64,000 nucleotides of DNA, from NCBI RefSeq assembly GCF_037042905.1, contig NC_087245.1, forward strand, positions 1,798,001 through 1,862,000. The letters are read 5' to 3'. The DNA comes from Lytechinus pictus. Its lineage: Eukaryota. Of the stretch, positions 25,269-64,000 are shown one piece after another. The notes under the pieces are model-generated. The model had not been told where the DNA came from and made no database searches. It was given only the letters and a program-made list of their open reading frames with translations. Positions within the stretch are counted from its first letter, which is position 1, and every line of letters begins with the position of its first letter. Made by a program: the position numbers and the translations under genes.

Positions 25269-25950
25269 TAAGTGTATATTAAGAAAAGGAAATTTCTTTT
25301 TAACTAATTAGGTTCTTGAATAGAAACATACTATTTACATCTGTATTATATTGGAATTGAGATACCTTCGTTATCTGCCTTGCGGAGATATCCTTATTTC
25401 CAACCCCCATTTTACAATTCAAATAAATTCTATCATTTCGCAAGCTGCTAACTGCATCCTTGCTATGCTACACTTGGTTGCAAAGTTTCTCTTAAAATAT
25501 CACTCTACTTTACCTTTGCTTCCTAACCATGCTTCCATCATATATCTAAATAATAAGAGTTGCTAATAGCTAGAGGTTGAGACAATCTATACATTTATTG
25601 CCGAGGCTCAGACATTTCAAGAATAGAAGCAATTCAAAAAAGAGCAAACTGCTTCTATTTTTCTCACGATGCGCTCGGCATAAATGCATTTTAAAGTTTT
25701 CACCTCAATTTTAGGGGCCGGACGAAAATAGCCCCTAGAGCACGAGGCAATAGAAGGCAGAAATCAATATGGAAACCGTGCATTAAAACTAGTGACATGA
25801 TTCCCTTTGGGTACAGAAAAAATATCTAGACTTGTTACCAGACCAACCTTGGTTAAAATCTTTAATAACAGACATGAAAAATTGAAATTGAATTGAATTG
25901 AAATTGAAAATAAAGGAGAGCTATGATCTGGGGCCTATTTCATAAAGGTA

Positions 25951-26175
25951 CAGCGTCAGCGTCAAGTCCCAAAACAGCGTCAAATCTTCACTTGCAGCGT
26001 CAAATTTAATATTTGACGCTGCAGCGCATTTCATAAAGAGTTGACGCTCCAGTAGGAGCGTCAACTCTTTACTGGAGCGTCAAGTATGGTTACTGGAGCG
26101 TCAAATAGGGTTAAATATCTGACGCTGGTCATGGGGGAGCGTCAAGTTGACATTGTAAGGGTTTTTCAACGTCAA
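25951..26175. repeat. Left subterminal motif array (11 x AGCGTCA, both orientations, with hairpins)
   Basis: Copies at about 25952, 25958, 25976, 25996, 26015(rc), 26042(rc), 26057, 26076, 26097, 26120(rc), 26138; 17-bp stem taaagagttgacgctcc/ggagcgtcaactcttta at 26034-26071. Confidence 0.9.
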
Positions 26176-26189
26176 GTTCATTGTTCAGA

Positions 26190-29100
26190 ATGGCGTACGT
26201 TGTGCTGTTGCACGCACAAAGAGCTCTGAGGAGAGACAGAATTTTTAGGGATCGTACTCAGCCTTTGGAGATATACGACGACACTGATATGCTCAAGAAA
26301 TATCGTTTCAACCGACAAGGAGTTATTTTTTTAATAGATTTTCTGCGAGAAGAACTAGCTCATCCGACAAATAGGAATCACGCTATTCCACCAACCTTAC
26401 AAGTATTCATTGCACTGAGGTTTTACGCTACTGGCTCAGTCCTTGACAATAGTGCTGTGCACCATGGTGTAAGCATATCAACGGCTTGCAGGATAGTAAG
26501 AGCTGTCAGCTGTGCACTCTCCAATCGGAAAAATGAGGTAATTAATTACTTAGTTAATGTTAGGCTTCGGTTTGCATTTTAAAATGACTCAACTCCTCTC
26601 ATAATCTCAGACTAAAATCTGCATACATTTGATTAAGTGGGGCTGGCTTCAGGGCTTGGGATGGTTTTAACCAAGTTTAAACTCTGCTTCTGCTTACATT
26701 ATTACCTCGTTCGTAGGATGAGTGCTTCTGGCTAGATTCACAGCAACTGACTCATTTGGTATTTATTAATGGTAAAGGTTTTTGAAAATCCAAAATTCAA
26801 TAAAAATAAAAATAAATCACTCTGACAATTCACATTTCCAGCTATACGATATCCTGGGCCTTGGGTGTATATGAAGACCCATTTTACCCAGGGAGCTCCG
26901 GCCCGCGAAGCAGTGGCACAGTGCGTAACTCCCTGGCCTGGGATAATCTATCTAGTCTGTATTTACGCCGGTAATGACGGCTTGATCTATTCTAGAATCT
27001 AGGCCTTTTCAAAGTCGAGCCTTGAACCTACCCATAATCCATATCAAATCATTCAATAAAAAAAAAAGTCATGACAAATGTACCGTATTTACAGTTAACT
27101 TAAATGTCGACGAGTTTATAGGCGGCCATAGGCATAAATTCACTCGTTGACGGTTGAGCTCGATCGCTGCAACTTGTTCCTAATCCTAGTCCCACACGTA
27201 ACAAATGCTGTAGCCATCCTGGGGCAAAGTCTGCAATTCCTTTTCAATGTTGTTCCAGGGGCCACCAAGCCTCGCCAATCCTTGTAAGTCACATAAATAA
27301 TCAGAACAATATTGAAAAAGCTGCATCCAAAAGCCTTAAGTAGATTTACTTACAACTTTTTGGTAAAGAACTTGGCTTAGTCTAGCTGAACTCTAACTTA
27401 CTCTCTAGTCTAAACGTTAACTCTACCGGCGGCTGGCCCACTAGTGAAATGAGATGGCGCTTGTGACTTGCTTGTGTACGATCAACAACCTGATAAATGA
27501 AGGAGTCTTTTTTTTTGTAATGCGAAGCCGTGATTTGGGGGGGGGGTGAGGCATATCAAGCCCCCGATGGTATGGTATAGATACAAAACGAATGACAATA
27601 TTTGTTATGTTTTGTCGGTAGGAAAAGTCAATTGCCTGATACAGGGGTGGGTTGCATGCCGGGGTTGCATGCATGCATAATTTTCCAGGGGGGGGGGGAT
27701 TTTCCCCGAAGAAAATATGACAAGCAGAACAAGAAAAAAAAATAATGAATAAGATTATCACCCCAAAATTGAAGGTCATTTCCTCCACGCAAAATTTTGG
27801 AAAAAAAAGTTCTCACTCATGTAGGAAGGGCAGCATATCCCATGAAAATATGCTGTGACTTTCAAAGGAGGGGGTGGCGAATTTATATTATAATCATGGC
27901 TCTTAAATGGATAAGTGCAATGTTTGATAAATTTCAGGGGCGGATCCAGCTTTCGCCATGAGGGGGGCCGACAAATATTTTCATCAACATTTTTCTCGAT
28001 TGGCCGCTATAATCTGATTTTTTGTTGTTGGTTTTTTCAGGGGGTAGTCCTAACAAAAGGCTGAAGTTTTAAGTATGTTAGTTTTTATTGTTATAAACAA
28101 GATAAGGTATATCATGTGGTCTTGATATATAATGCGAGCACGAAGCGCGAGCTAGAATTCTTTGATATTTTATGGCCTTATATAGGACTGAAGATTCTGA
28201 GCATTTTTTATAATCATGAACAAAGATAAGTATCCAACTAAAAAATGCGAGCGCAAAGTGCGAGTCGAAATTTTATTAGAGTTACGTGAAAAGGGACTCA
28301 ATTAGGACTGTTTTAGTGATTAATGAAGAGGATACAAGTATCACCAATTAAATAATGAGAGTGCGAAGCGCGAGCTCAAAATTTTTGATATTCCGACCTG
28401 AAAACTGGACAGTCTAAGCGCGTTTTAATTTGAATAAAGAACAAGCTGTTGTCCCTAACAGTTAAATGCGAGCGCGATGCACGAGGTTAATTTTTTGATA
28501 TACTGACATGATAAAGGAGCATTTTGACAAATTTTGGAAAGAATTTCCAAAGAGGATAGGTATCTCACAAATCAAACAATGCGATCGCGCAGCGCGAGCT
28601 GAAAATTTTGATATAACAATTTGTGTAAATCGAACAAAATAATTGAAGCTTGATGTGCGAGCTAAAATATTGTGTGCGAATTTTATTTCAGAACTGGATA
28701 TATTAAGAGTCATTTAATCCTCTTGATTCATTACACGGGCAATGCGAGCGCGAAAATTTTTATTATAGGTCTATTTTCCAATTCTTCCCCTCACCTTTTT
28801 CTTGTTTCCTTTCGGGATCGGGCCGGCCGTTACGAGTCTGTAAATGACACATCATGGGTATAATACCTTTCTTACTTTTCTTTCTGTTTTTCGTATCAAG
28901 TTAAAGAGTACACTTTTTTCTGCAGTATTTGAGTATGATCCAATATACGTGGATTCTAATCAATACATTTTGATACTTGAAAATAAGGGGGGGGGGACTG
29001 AATGTGCCCCTGGATCCGCCATTGGCCTGATATATTTTACAAATGAATGATGCCAAATAAGGTATATTACTAAATTCCTATCAATTTGGAACAAGCTGGT

Positions 29101-32100
29101 AATGGGGGAGAAATATAAGGAGCCTTTACTAACTTTTTTTTAAAGGAGCGTAAAATAAGTGTTGTACTCGATCTTCAGCATTTCTTACAGTTTAATTGCC
29201 AGATTTGTGCATTTACTCTCGGTGAAATGATTAAAAAATTTTAAATAATCATTATTCTTATTTATTTTATTTTTATTTCATTTATTTATTTATTTATTTA
29301 TTTATTTATTCATTCATTTTTTTTATTTTTTTTTATTTTTTATTTTTTATTGCTGCTATTTAGAGTCGATTATGCTCATGATTCTGCTGTCAAATTATCA
29401 TATGTTGAATAAATACTCACTGTCAATAGGCAAATGCATTACAAATACTCAATATATATTCCTAACGTTTCTTTGTCGGGAGGAAAAATCCATTATTTAA
29501 ATGAATACTTGGAATATGAAGGCCACAATTATACCTTTGTTATATATCATGCTAAATCTTTGGCTGATATTTCGATCATTTTCTCTTGAATGACCAAACA
29601 AATACCCCAGAAATAAATATCCCATTCTGGCATCTGTCCAAATATAAATATTCATGAATAATATGCATTATTTCATTGCTAACAAGTTCTAAGTTTAATA
29701 TGTAAATATATAGCTTGTATATTTAATAACATGATTAATATTGATCTCCATGTGCTATATTAATTTCTTTATTCTAATTTAAATGAAAACATTGCCATTG
29801 CCGGTCTTATACCCATCTTTTTCACATCCCCAAACACTTTCACTGTGGGATCCGATGATAGAAACTAACACACAAACTATTTCTAATCAATGTTTTCAAA
29901 GGCTTAGAGGAGTGATGTCATTTCTGTAAGATTCTTGCATTTATTTCTCATTTTGTTGAACTGATTTTAAATCAGTTTCAGAAAAAGATCCCCTACTTTA
30001 TTCTAAATTCTATTTGAAAAATATAAAAAAAGAATCTTACGAAACCCGGCTTACTCATATTTCCAAATTCTTCCCTATTATATATTGAAAGAACTCAAAG
30101 ATTTTCTTTTAACCATCAGCTATCATCAGTCTGCAATAGACAATGGAATTTAAAGTACATAAAAATATGCATATTTAAAATATTTCATAGGTCAATAATT
30201 TAATTTATTTAAATGCAATTTTATACACTTTACAATATTTACATCACATGTAGTAATACTTATATTAATTTATCAATAAGTAATAACTTTGCATTAGATA
30301 TATTAAGCATTTGATTACACGTTGATACCAAATATACAAAGAATTGGTCAAAAATATTCATAACAAAATGATTTTTAGAGTATGATGGAATGTTGCATTT
30401 TCTAACATGGCAAATAAAATACCAGTAAGTGTAATTTTCAAGATATTTCGAGAAGAATGTTCCGCAATTATTGACTACAGTGGCACTTATAATATTGTCA
30501 TCATCTCTAAATTATCATTTCTTACTGCAGTTCATCACATTCCCCACAACACCGCACAAAATAAGGGAACAACAGAATAAGTTCTACCACATTGCACAGT
30601 TTCCAAAGGTGATTGGTGCGATTGACGGAACTCACATCTATCTACATGGAGCACCATTGGGACAGGATGAGTACCTGTACACCAACAGGAAAGGGCGGTA
30701 CTCAATAAACGTCCAGCTTATCTGCGATGCAGATTTCCGAATAATCAACGTGGTAGCTAGATGGCCCGGGAGTACGCATGACTCCAGAATTCTCCAGGTA
30801 ATATACAACAGATTATTTTATTTGCTTTTGCATAGTTAATTCGTCAAATATTTAATATTTTGTATCAATATATACCATTCTAGAATTTGACGTTTAACCT
30901 GTTGACAGATAATGGAGCAAAAAAACTGCCAAACTTCTATTTTTAGGATTTTGATGAAATTCAAATTCAAATTTTACTTTACAAAAAAGAAAAAGTAGAA
31001 TGGCAAGCTAGTAAATGAATTGCACGTATATCTCCCAATTTCTTCATGAACTTAACTTTTTTGAGTTGTTGAAAGTTAAGTCATCATTACTTTTTTAGCA
31101 TCGATATCTTTGTGTTTATTCATTTGTTTTACTATTTGCAGCACCCCTTGACACACATGAAATCAATTATTGTGGTTTAATTTTTACAGAACAGTGTAGT
31201 TGGACAGAACTATGCCAATGGACGTTTGCATGGCATTCTCCTTGGAGATTCAGGCTATGCCCTGCACCCTTGGCTTATGACTCCTATCCTGAACCCCCAA
31301 AATCAAGCACAGAGAGCGTACAACCAGTAAGTAGTATTCATATTTCTTAAAGTTTGGAACACACATTCTATCTTCATCCCCCTTGAGCTGGTTGGCTGAT
31401 GACTTATACACTGTGAAAAACAAATCAGTGTTACATGTTTATCATCAACAATGTACTTTACATCTAGATAAAGACGACCACTGAAAAACACTTCAAATAT
31501 CAATCCTTTTCTTTTTTGTTAGTGGACATTCACAAATACCATAAAATCTATCATAAGAATGAGACACTTGATATGAAACAGGTAGGGAGTTACTTTTTCC
31601 AACAGTGTGAAAAGCAATATTCAATAACAACATTCTATGCATTGTACAATTAGAAATGTGTCCACTGTCCACACCATGAAAAGAAGAAAACAAGTGGTCC
31701 TAACATTTTTTAAATCTAATAACCATCATATATATATTTATGTATATTTCAATGTTTTTGCATTTCTTATAAAGATATCATTTCTCAACATTTTATTTTA
31801 AATATTGTTTCTTTCATGTTTGACCCTACATGTAGTTCTCCCGGGGGAGGGGGGGGCCATAATGCCCCACCCTGACAATTTTCGCGATTTATCTGCTGCG
31901 CAAAATTTTAATTTCTTAATCTTCATGAATTTTACAGATCTCACTGCCGCACAAGAGCGCTCATTGAGCAAGTTAATGGGCAATTAAAGAACAAATTTAG
32001 GTGCTTAATTGGACAAGGACTCCAAATGCGGCCTGACAGAGCCTCCAACGTCATCTTGGCCTGTGCTGTGCTGCATAATATCAGCAAACAACTTCGGCAG

Positions 32101-32211
32101 CCTGAAGTTCTCTTCGACGTGGAAGCAAATGATGACATAGTTGAGCAAGTAGATCACGCCCCCAATGGTGTAGAAGCACGGAATGTTATCATTGAAAATC
32201 ACTTTTCATAG
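26190..32211 (+). CDS. Harbinger DDE transposase (HARBI1-like), 341 aa; exons 26190-26537, 30531-30797, 31190-31326, 31938-32211
   Basis: All three introns are GT-AG (phases 0, 0, 2) and join into one 1026-nt ORF. N-terminal KYRF..LQVFIALRFYATG HTH region; catalytic motifs IGAIDGTH, RWPGSTHDSRI, LLGDSGY and HCRTRALIEQVNGQLKNKFRCL; also ACAVLHN. Confidence 0.95.
27935..29024. mobile_element. Inverted copy of the 3164-4243 element nested in transposase intron 1
   Basis: Starts caggggcggatccagctttcgcc, the reverse complement of 4221-4243; collinear inverted similarity over ~1 kb; ends ctggatccgccattg; no clean TSD. Confidence 0.8.
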
Positions 32212-32271
32212 TATAATATTGTTTTTGGTGTAGTTGCTGGCAAAATTATGAACATTCTGATATCAATTATT

Positions 32272-34088
32272 ACAAACTATCAATCTAGTGTCTTTTCAAA
32301 TTGGACAATTTTATGTATGTCCAAGGGTTGTATGCTGTTATACAAAAAAGAAACAAACTATCAACCTAGTGTCATTTCAAATTGGACAGTATATCCAATG
32401 GTTGAATGTTATTTTACAAAAAGAAACAAACTATCAACCTAGTGTCATTTCAAATTGGACAGTATGTCCAAGGGTTGTATGCTGTTATACAAAAAAGATA
32501 CAAACTATCAACCTAGTGTCTTTTCAAATTGGACAGTATATCCAATGGTTGAATGTTATTTTACAAAAAGAAACAAACTATCAACCTAGTGTCTTTTCAA
32601 ATTGGACAGTATATCCAATGGTTGAATGTTATTTTACAAAAAGAAACAAACTATCAACCTAGTGTCATTTCAAATTGGACAGTATGTCCAAGAGTTGTAT
32701 GATGTTATACAAAAAAGATACAAACTATCAACCTAGTGTCTTTTCAAATTGGACAGTATATCCAATGGTTGAATGTTATTTTACAAAAAGAAACAAACTA
32801 TCAACCTAGTGTCTTTTCAAATTGGACAATTTTATGTATGTCCAAGGGTTGTATGCTGTTATACAAAAAAGATACAAACTATCAACCTAGTGTCTTTTCA
32901 AATTGGACAGTATATCCAATGGTTGAATGTTATTTTACAAAAAGAAACAAACTATCAACCTAGTGTCTTTTCAAATTGGACAGTATATCCAATGGTTGAA
33001 TGTTATTTTACAAAAAGAAACAAACTATCAACCTAGTGTCATTTCAAATTGGACAGTATGTCCAAGAGTTGTATGATGTTATACAAAAAAGATACAAACT
33101 ATCAACCTAGTGTCTTTTCAAATTGGACAGTATATCCAATGGTTGAATGTTATTTTACAAAAAGAAACAAACTATCAACCTAGTGTCATTTCAAATTGGA
33201 CAATTTTATGTATGTCCAAGGGTTGTATGCTGTTATACAAAAAAGATACAAACTATCAACCTAGTGTCTTTTCAAATTGGACAGTATATCCAATGGTTGA
33301 ATGTTATTTTACAAAAAGAAACAAACTATCAATCTAGTGTCTTTTCAAATTGGACAGTATATCCAATGGTTGAATGTTATTTTACAAAAAGAAACAAACT
33401 ATCAACCTAGTGTCATTTCAAATTGGACAGTATTTCCAAGAGTTGTATGATGTTATACAAAAAAGAAACAAACTATCAACCTAGTGTCTTTTCAAATTGG
33501 ACAATTTTATGTATGTCCAAGGGTTGTATGCTGTTATACAAAAAAGATACAAACTATCAACCTAGTGTCTTTTCAAATTGGACAGTATATCCAATGGTTG
33601 AATGTTATTTTACAAAAAGAAACAAACTATCAACCTAGTGTCATTTCAAATTGGACAATTTTATGTATGTCCAAGGGTTGTATGCTGTTATACAAAAAAG
33701 ATACAAACTATCAACCTAGTGTCTTTTCAAATTGGACAGTATATCCAATGGTTGAATGTTATTTTACAAAAAGAAACAAACTATCAACCTAGTGTCTTTT
33801 CAAATTGGACAGTATATCCAATGGTTGAATGTTATTTTACAAAAAGAAACAAACTATCAACCTAGTGTCATTTCAAATTGGACAGTATGTCCAAGAGTTG
33901 TATGATGTTATACAAAAAAGATACAAACTATCAACCTAGTGTCTTTTCAAATTGGACAGTATATCCAATGGTTGAATGTTATTTTACAAAAAGAAACAAA
34001 CTATCAACCTAGTGTCTTTTCAAATTGGACAATTTTATGTATGTCCAAGGGTTGTATGCTGTTATACAAAAAAGATACAAACTATCAA
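32272..34088. repeat. Tandem array of 24 units (73/74/81 bp) with three unit types and a 374-bp higher-order period
   Basis: Constant part ACAAACTATCAACCTAGTGTC(T/A)TTTCAAATTGGACA...TACAAAAA(A)GA(A/T). Variable part A gtatatccaatggttgaatgttattt, B attttatgtatgtccaagggttgtatgctgtta, C gtatgtccaag(a/g)gttgtatg(a/c)tgtta. Order BACAACABAACABAACBABAACAB. Confidence 0.95.
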
Positions 34089-34434
34089 ATCGGGTATTAA
34101 GACAGCTTTAAGGGCCTCAAATGTTTTTTTTTTAATTTATATATCATTACTTATGCCTTTACTGGTCTTGAAGTGTTTGAAGGATATTCACATATGTTGG
34201 AATCTTTCTTTTTACATCGAAAAATATTTGCCACATTTGATACACAATGGTATTCCCTTGGTAAAGAAAAGAATATTCATTAAAATACATGTATAAAGAG
34301 GTCTGAATTATAATTCTATAACTATAAAACCATGGTAACAATATATAGTGTGTCAATATAAAGGTCAGCTAGATCATCTGTGTTTTGTAATCTCTTTACA
34401 TCATCATTACCATAAACAAAATTAATTTGACCAT

Positions 34435-37400
34435 TTAATGTAGCTTATCCCTAATCTCCTTCAAGACCATGAGGATCCCCTGCAAGGCCTCCACCTTTTG
34501 GTCCTCCTTCTCTAAAAACCTTTCGTGGAAAGATATAAGAGATGCCTGGTGAGAAGTTCGGGGGAATGTTTCTGCTGGCTGCTCTCCTCCTGTGGCTCCT
34601 GTATTTCAAAATTGATAACAAAATGAATAATGATTAAGAATCAATGAAGCATATGAAATTGGTGAAGATTCATGACAGTTAAATTTCATGGAAAAGTGGG
34701 ATCAAATATAAATTTTCATATAAAATAAGAGAAATATAATAAAGAATATTTCATCATGAACATTTTGCAGACTACCTCACTTCCTACCATCTACAAATTG
34801 TCAGTGCAATCGGGTAATCCCAGTCAAGTTCTAAAAGCTCACCCCCCCCCCCCCTTTCATGGAGGATGTTCAGAGGAAATAGCTGGGCACTATAAGGGAT
34901 AAAATTTTAAATTGTATAGAAAACGTTTTGCATTGTAAATGAATGAATGAATGAATGAATGAATAATGAATGAATGAATGAATGAATGTTAGAAGGAGTG
35001 AATGAATCTGGGAGTGATGGGATGAATGATGGAATGAATGTATTGGAATAACGAATGCATGTATGAATGATTGAAATCTAATGTGATTTTCATTTATTTT
35101 TTTCATTTCAAAATGAATAAATTTGTGTAAAGACTATCAAACACAATATTCTGTCTTCCCATTTGTTATGTACTTTTTATAACAAAAAATAAGAAAAAGT
35201 TAGAAATGATGAATCTTTAAAAGTACTAAATGATCATAAATAAATATGAGTTAACTTGATGGTGGAAAGTGGTAAATGCTCAGAGGCATGAGCCCATCTT
35301 TAAATTTCAAAGACCAAGAGATACAGATGAGGTTAGAATAAAAATAAGAGAGAAAATCTATCAACCATAATAATAATGATAATAATATAGGGTATTTATA
35401 TTGCGCACATATCCACCTTGTTATAGGTGCTCAAGGCGCACCTATGTAACATGCAACATGTTGAGTCAACTATTATTTCTTTTACCACTGGCAAATAATT
35501 GAAATTGTAAAAGTTAATTCTATAGATTTCCTTTTGTTAATTGATTCATCAGGACCACACCAGACAGATCTCTTTCTTACCTTGTGGTATTTCTTCCCCT
35601 TGAACGATTTCCTCCTCCTCCTCCATCATATTCATAAGGAGTGCTGCTGCAGCGTCATTCTGACTTTCAGTCTGTAATTGAAAAATGAGATATAATACAT
35701 GAATAAAAGTTCAGTAATAACTTACAGAGAATATAGCATACCAAATATCTCCCAGAGAATATACCACCTCAAGTATGTCCCAGAATAGATCTCTCTTCAT
35801 TCCTCTTCCATCTACTAGATCCCTTCATTCATCATTTTCCTCTAAATCAACCTACATTTTACCTCCTTTGCATGAAGACCCAATATAGTGATCACATGTT
35901 TGCTGTAATTGCTCGTGCCCTCTGGAAAAATCTCCCAATTCAAACCATATCCAAAATGTTTCTTCCATAGAAATATCAAAATCCTTACTTATTACCTCAT
36001 CTTATTATTATAATTACTATCGTAACATATAACATAAATAAGCATTTAATCTTTCCTTTCTCAGTTCAAGAGCACTTTAAAAACCTGCCTTTTTAATATT
36101 ATATATATATGCTATATTCTTATTTAGATCAAGTGCATAATTAAGTATTAAATACTATGCGCTTAATAAATCTAACATTATCATTATCATAATAAATTAT
36201 GAACATAAAAAATTACCAATGGCAAGTCAGCCTCCACAGAGGTCTCTCCCTCCAGCCCACAAAAACCATCAAGGGCCTGTGGCGCCAGTGCCGCCAGTAC
36301 TTCTTCATACTTCTTGTTATATTTCACTGGTCCACCTCCTGAAAAAAAAATTAAAAAAATAAGTTTGAATTATTGATTCCAATAAAACCTCTATTTCTTT
36401 TCCTCTGGGTTTTCTTGTTTATGGTTAAGTGCATATTATAATTTTTGTTCCGAGAGCAATGACTTATTAATGAAAACATGAACAACATTTATAATTAACA
36501 TGGATCGCATATTACATTTTAAAGAATTGCTTTATTCATCAAAGCATGCACAACATAAGCAATGTGCGGGTGGGAGAACCAACGCTATAATTCACTCACT
36601 ATTTCTTATATTTATAGTATTAATCCCTAGAACCAAATGAATTATTCTCTCAGTGCAGTATGTTTCCAGATTTATTGTTTGTTTTATCCGAAAAGAATTT
36701 AACATAACAATAGTAGTTACATTTATATAGCGCTTATTATACTTTGTTTCTAAGCGCTTTACATTGCAATTATTATTACCCCGGTCATCGGATCCTGACG
36801 TGCCTGCACACAATGTATGCACTTTCTCCACTCCCTGGGGAGCATTCCAACAAGAGTTCCAAGACTAAATTGCTAGGCATACTACATAGGATTTTGCATC
36901 TTAACGGGTACCCATTTAAAACCTGGGTGGAAAGTGGCAAAGTGTGGATTAACGCTTTGCCAAGGGACGCTTGGCCGTGGTGGGAACACACGACCCTCTG
37001 ATCGCAAGGCGAGAGTCAGAATCGCTACACCATGATGATTCCACGATAAACCATAATATAAATAAAATTAAAATGAGCATGTGATATCATTTATTTAAGT
37101 TGTATGTCTTCTACGTCCAAATTTACAAACAAATAAAGGTAAACAAATTTTCATCCAATTAGCATGAATTTATCGTAATTTTTCAGTGGTTACAATTTTG
37201 ATATTGTTAGGATGAACTTGACATTGAACAAAAGAAGCCAAATTATGTTGTAATACCTGTTGCCATCCTTTGCAACCTATACTTTTTAGCTTTGCTGGAC
37301 CAGCTATTCCAGCTGGTCCTCAGATCCTTCCAGGACCTCCCTTTCGGGAGGCCCTGGGCCTCCATCTCCTGGAGAAGCTGGTTCCAGGTCCGCTCCTTCC

Positions 37401-38099
37401 TCTGCTGGACCTAATACATAATAATAAACGAGAAAACATGAAACCGATTACCAAAACCAACATGTAATATAATCGTAAATAAATCCTTTATTATGGTTCC
37501 TCTTATGTCCAAGTTTCATGAACTAGATCTATAAAATTTCAAAGTTATGATGACAATTCCACAAATACCCACATGGCCAAAGTTCGTTGACCCTATAAAG
37601 TGACCTTTGATCTTGGTCATGTGACCTGAAACTCAAGTAGGATCTTAAGTAATACACTACTACCCTTATGTCTAAGTTTCATGAACTAGGTCCATAAACT
37701 TTCAAAGTTATGATGACATTTCAAAAGAAAAACCTTGATTAAGATTTTGATATTGATTCCCCCAACATGGTCTAAGTTCATAGACCCTTAATGACCTTTG
37801 ACCTTGGTCATGTGACCTGAAACTCAGGCAGGATGTTCAGTAATACTTGATTACCCGTATGTCCATGTTCCTAAATGAGGGAGATTTGGGAGCAGTAACC
37901 ATTTCTGTTCTTGTTGGCTTGTCATTTTTTAAAGTTTATTCTCAGGGCCTTGAAAAAAAAATGTAGGCGAAATTAAACATACCCTCACACTGCAATGCCC
38001 TGCCTTTCCAAATAATGGCTCTCGATGCGCCCTAACAAACTCTGCCATGTGGTGGACCTGCTCTTCAGACAGGTTGCCCTGCCTGTTTTCTTGATTCAT
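34435..38099 (-). CDS. Myb/SANT-like (trihelix) DNA-binding protein of the Harbinger element, 215 aa; exons 38099-37983, 37410-37257, 36338-36217, 35671-35581, 34598-34435
   Basis: Four GT-AG introns (phases 0, 1, 0, 1) give a 648-nt ORF: MNQENRQGNLSEEQVHHMAEFVRAHREPLFGKAGHCSVRVQQRKERTWNQLLQEMEAQGLPKGRSWKDLRTSWNSWSSKAKKYRLQRMATGGGP, then an acidic linker and a C-terminal helix KVEALQGILMVLKEIRDKLH*. The Trp spacing and TGGG motif are typical of Harbinger ORF2/NAIF1/MSANTD proteins. Confidence 0.9.
34938..35070. repeat. (TGAA)n microsatellite in the last intron of the Myb-like gene
   Basis: Direct reading. Confidence 0.85.
36712..37045 (-). mobile_element. Near full-length tRNA-derived SINE in a Myb-like gene intron
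   Basis: Minus strand: tggtgtagcgattctgac (A box), partly deleted B box, body shared with the 17441 and 6513 copies, tail aagcgctatataaatgtaact. Confidence 0.75.
37500..37870. repeat. Two ~165-190-bp tandem units with TGACCTTTGA(C/T)CTTGGTCATGTGACCTGAAACTC motifs (interspersed repeat remnant)
   Basis: aagtttcatgaactag..tttcaaagttatgatgaca occurs at ~37511 and ~37674; the tgacctttga motif at 37601 and 37792. Confidence 0.7.
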
Positions 38100-40429
38100 C
38101 TGAAAGAAGTGTCAATTTCTCTTTAAATTTAACTTTTTCCCAATTAAAGTGATACAGACAGTTTCTTTCTTTCTTGTTTATAAATTACTTCTTAAACCAC
38201 TCTTGAGAAAGTAAATACTTTGGGAAGGCATTTCATTGATATGAAATGTGAATTTTTCCAACATTTTGGCAAATATACTAGGGAAGGACTTTTCTCACAC
38301 TTTTTTCCAGATATAACTTTTGCCATTTTCTTCTTATTTTTTTTTACAGTGGTTAAACCATTTATACCCCTTCCCATTGAATATGCCTGATTAAAAAATA
38401 TGTTTCTACTGAAAATAAAATAATACAAACTAAAGGATATAAAAATAGAAATGTGCCATTCCCAGAAGGTAAGTGAAAATTATTTGCTTGGCTTTTAATT
38501 ATATTCCAGTCAGAATAGACTGTTGCCACAGCTGTTAACAAATATTCGTAATGGCTTCTTAATTTTCCCCTTTTCCCCATGTTTATATTAATTTTGTTTT
38601 ATTCATTTTTCTTTCACTTTCTTTTCTTTTTTCCCTGTTCTTTGTTTTTTCTTTCTTTTGTTTTATTTCACTTATTTCTTTTCTTTTCTTTTTCTTTTTG
38701 TAATATACTTTTTGAAAATTATTTTCATTTGTTTCCCCCTTTTATGCATTGTTCTAATTTTGCAGAATATTTTTCTGTGATTTTCTCCTGCTATAATATA
38801 CTGCAAAAGGGAAAACAGAAATAAAATGGATTTGGGGCCTGCATAATCTAGGTTTTAGGATTCAAAGAGGAAGAAATGAAAAACCATAGTTTTGTACATC
38901 TATCTGTGTTTGCTATGCACTATTTATTTACTTTACCATTATGAGTGTGTGTGTCTATACAGAGATTTAAAAAAAAGTCCACACAACCTGGGAACAATAA
39001 AATTCATTTATTCTCTTTCAATCATTTCATTTTTACAATGATAGAAACAATTTATATTTTACCACAAGCCAATTAGCAAAGTAAAATAACAGCAAACAAG
39101 GTTTACATACAAGATGATAAAGTGGAAGTAACTTAGTGGTAGTGGCTGCAGAATTAATATTTCAGAAGTTTGTTTTATCAATTTTTAATGTGTTTCTTTA
39201 TATTTTTCGGGCCACCAAACTTTAATATCGGGCCACCAAAAAAAATTATTTGATGGTTTTGGTGGCCCGAACAAGCCACCACCAAAAACAGTTAATGTGG
39301 AGCCTTGATTACTAAGATATTACCAAAAAAATTTATGAACAGAGATTATAACATAGGACTATGTTAAATATTCCTTTCTGATTTCAAAGTATACAGTACA
39401 AGAGGCCTACATGCACAGGGTTCTGATTGTTCACTGAGACCACAAAACTAAGTAAATGAAGTATGCAGGCAATTGAGAAAAAGGGTATGTGTTCGCTGGA
39501 GTCTGTTATCCTAGTTTATAATTTCACAAACGGTCAGTAGTACGAGCAATTTGAGAATTTTGAGAATTTTAAAATTTTCTGGTAACTTTTTTGGTGGCTG
39601 CAGTTTCTGAATCCAGGGGCGGTATTCTGAACATTGTCTTTTCTCCATATTTTATCTTATCTCGGAGACAAAATTGGTATTCTGGTGGATGTCATAACTT
39701 TTGTCACAAAAATTGTCACAAATTTTGTCTCTTCTCTTTAGCGGGCACCAAAAATATGTGGCTTTAAATGGTAAAAAACTCCTCGAAACATATGGCTGCC
39801 AGCTGTCTAGGTTTTAACTAGATCGAAAGCTTCAGCCTCTATTATATTGGTTGTTCCGCTGAACTCAGCTCCGTTGGCTCCACGTACATCCATGTACCGG
39901 TACTCAGGAGTTTTTAACATTTTCAACATTTTTTTAATTTCTCCATTGTTAATGGAGAAATAAAAAATAAAAATAAAAAAATGTTTTAAAAACTCCTCAA
40001 AACTGATGGCTTGCCAGCTGTCTAGGTTTTAACAAAAAATTAAGGATATTTCGCCCTCGAAAAAATAAGCAAGCAAAAAAAAAAAAAAAAAAAACTTCAC
40101 TTTCAATTTTTTTTAATTTTACTTCTCCGGGGACAGGGGCACAGGCCGGCTGTGCCCCCCCCCCCCCCCGGATCCGCCAGTGCTTTCTTCCTAAACTTCT
40201 GACTTGAATTGAAATTTTAATTGTTTGATAAAATGATGGAAAGAAAAAAAAATCATAACATTGCATGTTAATGAATATGATAATGGTGAAATCCGGTTTT
40301 CAACTTCAACTTGCCACAGCACAGGCATAAACAAGGATTAGCTAACTTAATATAATTAGGTCTAGTACTAGTAGGCCTATAATATGGCACTTATCTAACA
40401 TTATATAAAAATTATTAAGATCTCCGCTA

Positions 40430-40960
40430 AGTGAGCAGGTAATTAACCGTAACCGTAAGGACACGGCTGCTTCACCGGAGCATCGGCCACCGGCGCGGCG
40501 CATCGGCCAGAGCCGCAACTCCGGGGTACTACACCGGTGCGGTATCGCCGTACAGTGCATGCGAAGGAACGCTCAACGAAGAAGCTACTGTCTGTGGGCT
40601 TGGCTAGCTACGCAGAATTCAAGTATTTTCCTTTACGAGTAAATATGGTAACAAAAGTCATTTCAAACCACCATTTCAATGAACCACGTGAATTAATTCG
40701 AACAAATTAATTATTAACGATTATGTCTTACTTTGCTGGAATTCTCCTTCGGCTTCGCGAGCGATCTTAAAGTTGAATCATCGAATTGAGTCTAACGTTA
40801 GTGGTGTTGTTACCGTGGGATCTAACTAGCTGACGTCACGTTTGTTTGTAAACAAAATTTGTTGGGTATTCCTCTGCGCGCCATGTGTGTCGCGCTCGCT
40901 CAGCTGATCGGCTGATTCAATCCGGATCGATCGGAGGCGGACACTGCCGCCGATTCGGGT
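40430..40960 (-). promoter_or_regulatory. CpG-rich putative promoter and non-coding first exon of the Myb-like gene
   Basis: GC/CpG-rich island just inside the right TIR; TGACGTCA at 40832; candidate minus-strand donor AAA|GTAAGA at 40731. The ATG at 38099 directly follows an acceptor (tttcag|ATG), which points to an upstream exon. Confidence 0.5.
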
Positions 40961-41023
40961 CACGTTGTAAAAAAAGTGGAGAGGAAGGGGATTTCCCCCT
41001 AATCAGCCTCGTACATGACTATT

Positions 41024-41190
41024 CAAATAATTCGCTGGAAAGTCAAATAATTCGCTGGAAAGTCAAGCTGACTTTCCAGCGAATGTGCTTTTATGAAATG
41101 CAAAGTTGCTATCATAGCAAGTTGCTAGCATAGCAAGTAAAAGTTGCTATCATAGCAAGTTGCTATGATAGCAACTTGCTATGATAGCAA
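41024..41190. repeat. Right subterminal motif array: five 15-bp palindromes TTGCTAT(C/G)ATAGCAA plus three copies of TTCGCTGGAAAGTCA
   Basis: Palindromes at 41106, 41122 (variant), 41144, 41160, 41176; ttcgctggaaagtca at 41031, 41051 and inverted at ~41069-41083. Confidence 0.9.
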
Positions 41191-41629
41191 CTCTTTATGA
41201 AATAGGCCCCTGGACATCAGTTTGGCAAATTCTTATTAATTTGTTTAATCAGTTGATTTTTTTTCATCAAGTCAGTATTTCATTGTAATTTGATTTTTTT
41301 TCCAGTCTCCCTTCTCGATTTTTCTTGTTATTTGTTATTCTTTTTTCTTTGCTTTCTTCTTCTTCTTCAATGCCTTCCTTTCATGAAGATATTGCACGAT
41401 AATGCTCGAACATATAGCTTGAATCCATTAGGTAAAATACACCCTTCACTTTCGTATTAGTTTTCATGGAAATTTGACAGGTCCCTCGTCTAGAAATATA
41501 TTTCGTAAAAAATGAAAGAAAAAAGACACAAAAGTATCTTTCACTTTGCACATCTGACACTATCATGCTTAATGACAAATGTGATAAAACTAATAGAAAT
41601 TTTGACCATGATTTCTTTTTAACAGTCGA

Positions 41630-61713: not shown

Positions 61714-62649
61714 GGACGTTCCACAGTTAAAGTGAAATCCATGTCATTTTCACCAAACTTTGCACATAGATACTTTAGAACCTTAATATTCGAAATATGC
61801 AAAAATTAACATAGGTCCATGTGCTTGATTTTTTGCTATAGAACTTCAAAGTTCACCCAAATTGATGTTCTTAAGAATTGCTCATTCAAAAGAATTTGGC
61901 ATTTTTAGACCGCCCAAGATTACTACAATGAGTTTAAACCTGTATTACTCAGTCAAAATACATGAAAAAGTCATCAAATTTCGCAAGAGAGTTAATAATT
62001 GTATTGTTAGAATGGAGAATATATTTATAGTGCTATTTGTTTGCAATTTTAACTTTAACAGCACTGTCAGTTCTTAAAAATGGCGTAAAAGATAACAAAA
62101 TCCCAATCTAAAAAATGTGAAATTTCAGTAACAAACTACAATAGTACAATAAATGCTGCACTTTATTCAAAATCCATGTCATTTTCACCAAAATTTGTAG
62201 AGTTGTAGAGGAAGGTATACCTAAGAGGAACAAACATTAAAAAATAGGGGTTCATGTGCTTGTTTTTAAACTATCAGTATTTTTATTAGAGCAAATGTGA
62301 TTTTTAAAACACCAAAAATGCGCAGAATGCTTTATATCTATGTGAAGAAAAAATCAAAACCACTCTACCATTTATTCAAACTCGGGGTAATATTCGTGAT
62401 TCTTGGCAGCACTGCAGAGTAAAGTATCTTGAAATTGTAGAGAATCTTTTTTTGAATTGTCCATGGAATAATTCAATTTTTTAGCTTCATGAAATAACGC
62501 ATCGGATCTGCAGCTAAAGTGCAGGAGATGAGAAAAATCAGCACATACCCGCAGCTAATTAATCACCTGTTTATCCATTGTGACGTCAGCGCGCAGAGTG
62601 TAAACTATGCGCAGATCATAATGCGCACAAACATAACTGTGGAACGTCC
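61714..62649. mobile_element. 936-bp non-autonomous Kolobok-type DNA transposon
   Basis: TTAA|GGACGTTCCACAGTTA...TAACTGTGGAACGTCC|TTAA (perfect 16-bp TIR); internal repeat aaatccatgtcattttcaccaaa at 61735 and 62170. Confidence 0.85.
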
Positions 62650-64000
62650 TTAAGTATACAAAAACTCTTAAACGAATCCAAATGTATAAATATAATATCC
62701 AGAATGAGAGGGAATTATCAAGTCTAAATTTATGGCGTGAAATTTATCAATCCCATCAAGTCACATCATACTACTTTCATATCTTCTGTAGATCGTAATA
62801 AGTCACAAACACGTAATTATGGCCGTTTCCCTTTGAATTGTTGAGTGAACAGGACCTTTGAGGCGGTGGTCGATACATTCAACATGTGGGTATAGATAGA
62901 ATATGAATCCACGCTCTCACTCGCTCGTCTTTCTTCACTCTATGCTTGTGTCTCTTGAGACTCTAATGACTCGCTAGGCAAGATTTATTTACGTAGTGAC
63001 GCCGCGCCAGCCGAACCAAAGATCCCTCTGTACACGGCTAAATCACAGAGCTGAATGATGAAAGGCCATGTTCACACCACAACATTTAACTCCAAGTTCT
63101 CTCGATCTATAAAAGTAGATGCTCTTCTTAAATTTGCCTTGTATTGTTTGGAAATTTGAACGCTTGCGTGTTTAATGAGAAAGTACGAATATGCTGGATG
63201 TCTTTAAAATTGTTTTTTTCTACTCTCTAGTTACCAATCTGGAGCATTATACAATGAAGGATATGAAATTGATCACTCATTGTCGGCGGCTTCAATTTTC
63301 ATATTGATATGCATGAAAGAAGAACACATGCTGTTCAACATGTTGCCAAAATAACATTAGATACATTTTTTTAGATTACGGAATGATGCCTCATAAGAAT
63401 TGCATATCATTAGCAATATCAGGAAGTAATCTTCTTTGATCTATCCTTATTTTTGTGCAACTTGCTTGTGTATTCATCTTTTTTTTTTTTTTATATTCTG
63501 CATTTTAGCACTTTTTTGTCGTTCGTGGGTTTTTTTTACGAAATTCAAATTGGTAATAAAATGAGATAATCATGTGCTCCCATATTTTTGAAAATAAAAT
63601 AGTTGTGCTCGCTATAATGACTACTAGTCACTTGACATAGATAATAACCGCATTGAAAGTTGATTATGCTAATTTGCATAATAGACACGTGGGAATGTAG
63701 CCTACACAAACAGACCAATCACCTTCCCAATACATTGAGAATAGTAGGTCTTTGTATTTATTAATTTCGTTGAGCCACATTCAATAAAAAGTGTATGCAC
63801 ATCAAAAATTCAAAAAAAAAATTCGACTTTGAAATTTTCTAAAATACCATTTTATTTTTACAATTTAGTTTTTAAACTTTTTTTTTACGAGTGAACATCA
63901 TGATTTTAGGGAAATGGTGTTGAAGCAGGGAAAAACTATACGAATAGTCCTTGAATCAAAATGTTCCCTACAAGAAAACGAGATAAGAAAAGAGATCCAG

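Follow-up and report, generated by a model that had tools for sequence, protein, structure and literature searches.

Do positions 25931-41209 of this stretch of Lytechinus pictus DNA, in which two predicted genes with seven introns lie between inverted ends, belong to one transposon, and could that transposon still supply proteins? The stretch analysed here (hereafter the window) comprises 64,000 nt and corresponds to C1:1798001-1862000 of the 812-Mb assembly. An initial annotation, made from the sequence alone, had described the locus as a complete two-gene Harbinger element that was either still mobile or a pair of genes under host selection. We conclude that the 15,279-bp interval is very probably one copy, complete in structure, of a PIF/Harbinger DNA transposon of the CWG-targeting "NuwaI" type. 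The characteristics of the superfamily are present together, namely a DDE_Tnp_4-type transposase with the D-D-E residues, a Myb/SANT-like second gene, and inverted ends accompanied by a 3-bp duplication.

Structure of the element and its predicted genes

The perfect 17-bp inverted ends, flanked by CTG on both sides, were confirmed at the positions listed in Table 1. Just internal to each end lies a cluster of short motifs, and by analogy with Harbinger3_DR these clusters are candidate binding sites for the Myb-like protein. If the element works as Harbinger3_DR and Ping/Pong do, the Myb-like protein would bind the subterminal motifs and recruit the transposase, which would then excise the element and insert it at a palindromic W-Y-CWG-R-W site with duplication of the CWG.

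The joined coding exons of both genes were translated by script to count length and stops, and Pfam was searched exon by exon. The predicted transposase consists of four exons that add up to 1026 nt and encode 341 amino acids with zero internal stops, and its three introns (3993, 392 and 611 nt) all begin with GT and end with AG. The DDE_Tnp_4 profile is covered in order and free of gaps over exons 2-4, and the catalytic triad is intact. For exon 1, a word search returned relatives at 50-73% identity; the same search, which was limited by its length filter, found no near-identical exon 1 elsewhere, the best relative being the one at 73%. In the closer relatives the similarity ends precisely at the exon 1 donor. 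Because the uninterrupted homologue P0013 aligns across exons 1 and 2, with its residues 5-117 matching residues 4-116 of exon 1 and its residues 119-168 matching residues 2-51 of exon 2, the predicted first splice junction of the transposase is confirmed to the residue. No AATAAA occurs between the transposase stop codon and the start of the tandem array.

The second gene is convergent to the transposase gene, and its five coding exons encode a predicted Myb-like protein of 215 amino acids; all four of its introns are of the GT..AG type. Exon 2 alone matched Myb_DNA-bind_5 with 27.6 bits, above the Pfam cut-off of 21.7. At the end of exon 1, an equally in-phase donor 6 nt upstream would yield a protein of 213 amino acids. 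A pyrimidine run that ends in CAG and resembles a splice acceptor directly precedes the ATG (window 38100-38125). This run suggests that a non-coding Myb exon lies further upstream; the 1155-bp repeat that is inserted upstream of the ATG would then be located in an intron of the 5′ untranslated region and would perhaps be harmless.

Overall, the ends, gene models and Pfam matches bear out the initial annotation of a complete two-gene Harbinger, including the four-exon transposase with its intact triad, the convergent five-exon Myb/SANT gene, and the seven GT..AG introns with open frames. The Pfam run that it had proposed as a check of both families placed the two proteins as expected, DDE_Tnp_4 on transposase exons 2-4 and Myb_DNA-bind_5 on Myb exon 2, and the proposed genome-wide search of the ends is in line with a second long copy with different flanks and returned about 100 short partners.

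A second long copy and a diverged sister family

The exons of the transposase and Myb genes occur in only two genomic copies, the window copy and one at C3:77960254-77973969. The C3 copy is 13,716 bp long and colinear with the window copy, introns included. Because its flanks are unrelated to those of the window copy right up to the element ends, the two copies evidently arose by transposition and not by segmental duplication. They differ at 12 of 1674 exon positions (0.72%) and at 77 of 10589 non-exon positions (0.73%; Fisher p = 1), a comparison of low power with only 12 exon differences. This equal divergence reflects neutral drift of transposon copies rather than host selection. Three transposase residues differ between the two copies. 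In the Myb gene of the C3 copy, a complex +1-nt change just before the exon 1 donor leaves both possible donors out of phase. No other copy in the assembly keeps both reading frames open, and the window copy is therefore the best candidate for a source of the proteins.

Since the split, the tandem array, which is part of the element in both copies, has expanded in the window copy and is now 2.6 times as long as in C3. The window copy also gained the 1155-bp repeat upstream of the Myb ATG (Table 1). The C3 copy gained a 613-bp element in transposase intron 1 (L061:4084-4696) that is absent from the window copy. This insertion is bounded by short inverted ends (GGACAAGTCCACC) and by a TTTAAA on either side, of which the corresponding site of the window copy has a single one, and it resembles a young miniature element from a different family. 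At C5:46618669-46619402, a left end of the family precedes, by about 600 bp, a stretch that matches the beginning of transposase intron 1 at 78% identity; this may represent a truncated older relative of the long element.

A sister element at C11:24514104-24529084 (L063+L064) is 14,981 bp long and shares 55-72% protein identity with the window element, to which its nucleotide similarity is confined to one exon. Perfect 18-bp ends (GGGCCCGTTTCATAAAAC), each with a CAG immediately outside, border it, its exons follow in the same order, and its first transposase intron measures 3.6 kb. The ends of this sister family occur 112 times in the genome, mostly in copies of about 5.6 kb.

Short partners and recent activity of the family

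Searched with an exact pattern that included the CWG, the genome contains 87 left and 104 right termini of the family, compared with 0 for the reversed control. Most of these ends belong to non-coding elements of about 1.9-2.1 kb, of which there are about 90-100 copies. Sequence common to the short partners and the long element is limited to the first 307 bp, a 170-bp internal segment (Table 1) and the last 240 bp; the 1.2-kb core of the partners is unrelated to the long element. The flanks of two short copies, L012 and L073 (C17:16993944 and C4:8980204), match each other on both sides at 96% identity; the two represent a single insertion that was subsequently copied along with the sequence around it, and were counted once.

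The mutual identity of 16 complete short copies averages 94.9% and reaches 99.5%. Because short copies are up to 99.5% identical, the family must have moved recently. Because the short partners have diverged from the long element by 5% in their left and 12% in their right ends, we only infer that the window element could cross-mobilise them.

Target site and discordant flanks

Read by script, 58 of 63 family ends were flanked by CTG or CAG; the outer C and the outer G were kept in 61 and 60 of the 63 ends, respectively. The flanking positions suggest a palindromic target of roughly S-W-Y-CWG-R-W-S. Because three paralogous empty sites each hold a single triplet (two in the repeat at window 62150-62700 and one beside the C3 copy), the 3-bp duplication is real; the nested insertion L052 offered no clean empty site. 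The interval 62150-62700 is itself a copy of an interspersed repeat whose paralogues hold three independent short-partner insertions (L078, L082 and L084) at different CWG-like sites. The window carries the empty site of all three, and this repeat is a hot target.

The two flanks of a copy do not always agree. We compared them in 61 copies, whose ends were taken from the genome-wide pattern matches, paired by hand and cross-checked against the script results. From left to right, the flanks read CTG..CTG in 22 copies, CAG..CAG in 16, CTG..CAG in 13 and CAG..CTG in 10, meaning that the central base of the CWG is discordant in 23 of the 61 (38%). The window copy itself is concordant. The sister family shows such discordance in 5 of 19 pairs, although two of the five may be a single duplicated locus. 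At L084, the paralogous empty site reads CTG and the filled site CTG..CAG.

Several explanations of the discordance were rejected. Mutation does not account for it because both outer bases of the triplet are preserved, copies with discordant flanks are not the more ancient ones (they diverge from the consensus by 1.8% on average, n = 5, compared with 4.1% for concordant copies, n = 9; not significant), and the probability of 23 or more discordant copies among 61 is 8 × 10−9 at a discordance rate of 10%. Blunt insertion at CWWG or a 1-bp duplication is excluded, since the empty sites hold one 3-nt triplet. Untemplated fill-in following an 'A-rule' predicts one discordant class only, whereas 13 and 10 copies were observed in the two classes.

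Our tentative explanation, which we hold to be somewhat short of probable, is that a strand of the donor triplet is carried over and ligated at the new site without fill-in. In piggyBac integration, the overhang of the element is ligated into the target gap in this way, without fill-in. The transposase would excise the element so that a 3-nt overhang, consisting of one strand of the donor triplet, remains at each end, and this overhang would be ligated into a 3-nt gap at a new CWG site without fill-in synthesis. A W:W mismatch would then form whenever the central bases of donor and target differ, and its resolution by replication would leave the donor base in one flank and the target base in the other. 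Under this carry-over model, all four flank classes are expected, with at most half of the copies discordant. The concordance is 62%, slightly more than one half (one-sided binomial P = 0.036), and under carry-over this excess would mean that some events were repaired or filled in.

For mPing, excision by a staggered cut inside its duplications has been proposed from yeast genetics (Gilbert et al. 2015, PMC4561436). The same work speaks against carry-over in one respect: when a TCA/TCA donor was used, 45 of the 46 new insertions lay at TTA or TAA and 1 at TCA (PMC4561436). An earlier report of natural discordant Harbinger duplications was not found in the literature searched, which does not prove that there is none.

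Mobile, dead or domesticated

Although each gene keeps an open frame with, in all, 8 kb of intron between the exons, which is the sole point in its favour, the initially proposed alternative of a transposase/Myb pair under host selection, comparable to HARBI1/NAIF1, is rejected because the ends are intact, the copies multiple, the partners many and the exons free of any sign of selection. In a domesticated pair, the intact inverted ends and flanking triplets, the second, non-syntenic copy at C3 with its broken Myb frame, and about 100 non-autonomous partners would all be out of place, and the exons are no more conserved than the introns (subject to the low power noted above). We therefore regard domestication as highly improbable.

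Other observations weigh against a complete copy that is the source of the family's proteins. Searched singly, transposase exon 1 and Myb exons 1, 3, 4 and 5 gave no Pfam match, which counts against this reading for transposase exon 1 and for Myb exons 1, 4 and 5; the short partners have diverged from the long element at both ends; and the 1155-bp repeat, together with the loss of 72 bp near the Myb ATG, could disturb Myb expression. Part of this concerns the gene models, which might be wrong chiefly in the 3′ half of the Myb gene or because a non-coding exon further upstream in that gene is missing from them. Homology support is lacking for Myb exons 4 and 5, Myb exon 1 has two in-phase donors 6 nt apart, and the acceptor-like sequence before the ATG points to an unmodelled upstream exon. 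However, the reading frame is maintained across the five Myb exons, their splice signals agree with the consensus, their predicted product has a plausible helical tail, and the transposase model is fixed by the order of the Pfam profile and by P0013; we consider an error of this kind improbable. A stronger competitor, although we still consider it unlikely, is that the window copy is structurally complete but dead, a recent fossil without working proteins, either through the repeat upstream of the Myb ATG or through a few amino-acid changes. The repeat lies just 55 bp from that ATG, three transposase residues differ between the long copies, exons and non-exons drift at the same rate, and the C3 sister copy is already frame-broken at the end of Myb exon 1. 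On the other side, the frames are open, the splice signals and catalytic residues are intact, the repeat may sit harmlessly in an intron of the 5′ untranslated region, and short partners with 99.5% identity imply that a source of the proteins existed very recently. We retain the reading of the window copy as a complete transposon and the best candidate source.

Size, introns and nested repeats

At 15,279 bp, the element is unusually large, as initially stated, compared with a mean of 4462 bp for CWG-type elements (PMC4482050). Coding exons make up 1674 bp (11% of the element), the seven introns 8013 bp (52%), the tandem array 1817 bp (12%), and the region upstream of the Myb ATG 3110 bp (20%). 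Of the 8.0 kb of intron, about 2.0 kb (approximately a quarter, as a lower bound) is recognisable as interspersed repeats, and the rest of the 4-kb transposase intron 1 matches the C3 copy only. The initial annotation had attributed the size to introns that absorbed other repeats. This is correct for those 2.0 kb, but intron 1 is mostly element-specific and the sister element reaches 14,981 bp. Because the diverged sister family has the same 15-kb layout, the intron-rich organisation is a conserved trait of the lineage, of which nested repeats explain only a part. Elsewhere in the window, runs of N occupy 8530-9184 and 9290-10191.

Table 1. Features of the element and its flanks in window coordinates, in order of position.
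Feature	Position	Strand	Basis or remark
Left target-site triplet, CTG	25928..25930		Sequence
Left terminal inverted repeat, 17 bp, GGGCCTATTTCATAAAG	25931..25947	+	Sequence; starts GGGCC
Left subterminal motif cluster, AGCGTCA(A), 8 direct and 3 inverted	25952..26176	+	Kept in short partners
Transposase exon 1 (predicted), 116 amino acids from ATG	26190..26537	+	Relatives; P0013 junction
Transposase intron 1, 3993 nt, GT..AG	26538..30530	+	Mostly element-specific
Old interspersed repeat of ~200 bp in transposase intron 1	27680..27877		Copies elsewhere ~70-78% identical
Nested high-copy repeat of ~1 kb in transposase intron 1	27934..28925		At least 38 copies, 87-90% identity; in both long copies
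Transposase exon 2 (predicted), first catalytic D (DGTH)	30531..30797	+	DDE_Tnp_4 profile 1-60, 43.7 bits
Transposase exon 3 (predicted), second D (GDSGY)	31190..31326	+	DDE_Tnp_4 profile 61-107
Transposase exon 4 (predicted), catalytic E (IEQVNG) and stop codon	31938..32211	+	DDE_Tnp_4 profile 107-158
Tandem array between the gene ends, 73-nt unit, ~23 copies	32272..34088		1817 bp, compared with 696 bp in the C3 copy
Myb exon 5 (predicted) with stop codon	34435..34598	-	Open frame and splice signals only
Recognisable interspersed repeat, intronic	35383..35445		
Myb exon 4 (predicted), acidic stretch	35581..35671	-	Open frame and splice signals only
Myb exon 3 (predicted), starts GGGP	36217..36338	-	Weakly conserved in sister family
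Interspersed repeat in Myb intron 2	36709..37035		
Myb exon 2 (predicted), second half of Myb/SANT-like domain	37257..37410	-	Myb_DNA-bind_5 profile 34-76 of 78
Interspersed repeat of two units, occupying the greater part of Myb intron 1	37489..37869		
Myb exon 1 (predicted), from ATG at 38099	37983..38099	-	Conserved in sister family; with the alternative donor the exon ends at 37989
High-copy repeat of 1155 bp, 55 bp upstream of the Myb ATG	38154..39308		Window copy only; replaces 72 bp kept in C3
Internal segment common to short partners	40047..40214		
Right subterminal cluster, four 15-bp palindromes TTGCTATSATAGCAA	41106..41190		
Right terminal inverted repeat, 17 bp, exact reverse complement of GGGCCTATTTCATAAAG	41193..41209	-	
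Right target-site triplet, CTG	41210..41212		Sequence

Significance and comparison with known systems

The locus is a clean and very large echinoderm representative of a known type of transposon, and a candidate source of proteins for a family of short elements that is abundant and was recently active. Together with the sister family, it shows that Harbinger families can retain an intron-rich organisation of 15 kb while they diverge. We consider the discordance of the flanks a more valuable lead than the element itself. To our knowledge, PIF/Harbinger is among the few large DNA-transposon superfamilies for which there are no biochemical data on cleavage and joining. The degenerate central base of the target would make carry-over from the donor visible in ordinary genome sequence, and, if the carry-over model is true, natural copies record a step of the Harbinger reaction that so far has only been modelled genetically for mPing. 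The likeness to piggyBac is one of mechanism, confined to the discordant central base, and implies no family relationship.

HARBI1 and NAIF1 belong to the same protein families as the two predicted products, a DDE_Tnp_4 protein and a Myb-like partner, but they are single-copy host genes without ends, whereas the window element has ends, flanking triplets, a second copy and partners. In Harbinger3_DR, the reconstructed zebrafish element, the transposase is recruited by the Myb-like protein, which attaches to the element ends (summarised in PMC2836001). Harbinger3_DR and rice Ping/Pong with mPing are likewise two-protein systems of a transposase and a Myb-like ORF1 product (PMC2836001), and both resemble the window element in that their short partners have nothing but the ends in common with them and in that the target preference extends as a palindrome around the 3-bp duplication. 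Ping/Pong differs in that its target is TWA, compared with CWG in the family described here and, according to the initial annotation, in Harbinger3_DR, and the window element is known from its sequence alone.

The nearest known system is the NuwaI group of the PIF/Harbinger-ISL2EU-Spy (PHIS) transposons, defined by a CWG duplication and by ends of 12-61 bp that start with GGG (Han et al. 2015, PMC4482050). Its open reading frames encode a DDE transposase without other domains and a Myb/SANT protein, and the survey, which lists no echinoderm host, reports a mean autonomous length of 4462 bp (PMC4482050). The window element agrees with this group in its CWG duplication, confirmed by empty sites, in its 17-bp ends starting with GGG and in its two genes, and differs from it in its length and its seven introns. 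On these structural features, we place the window element as a new and unusually large member of the known NuwaI kind.

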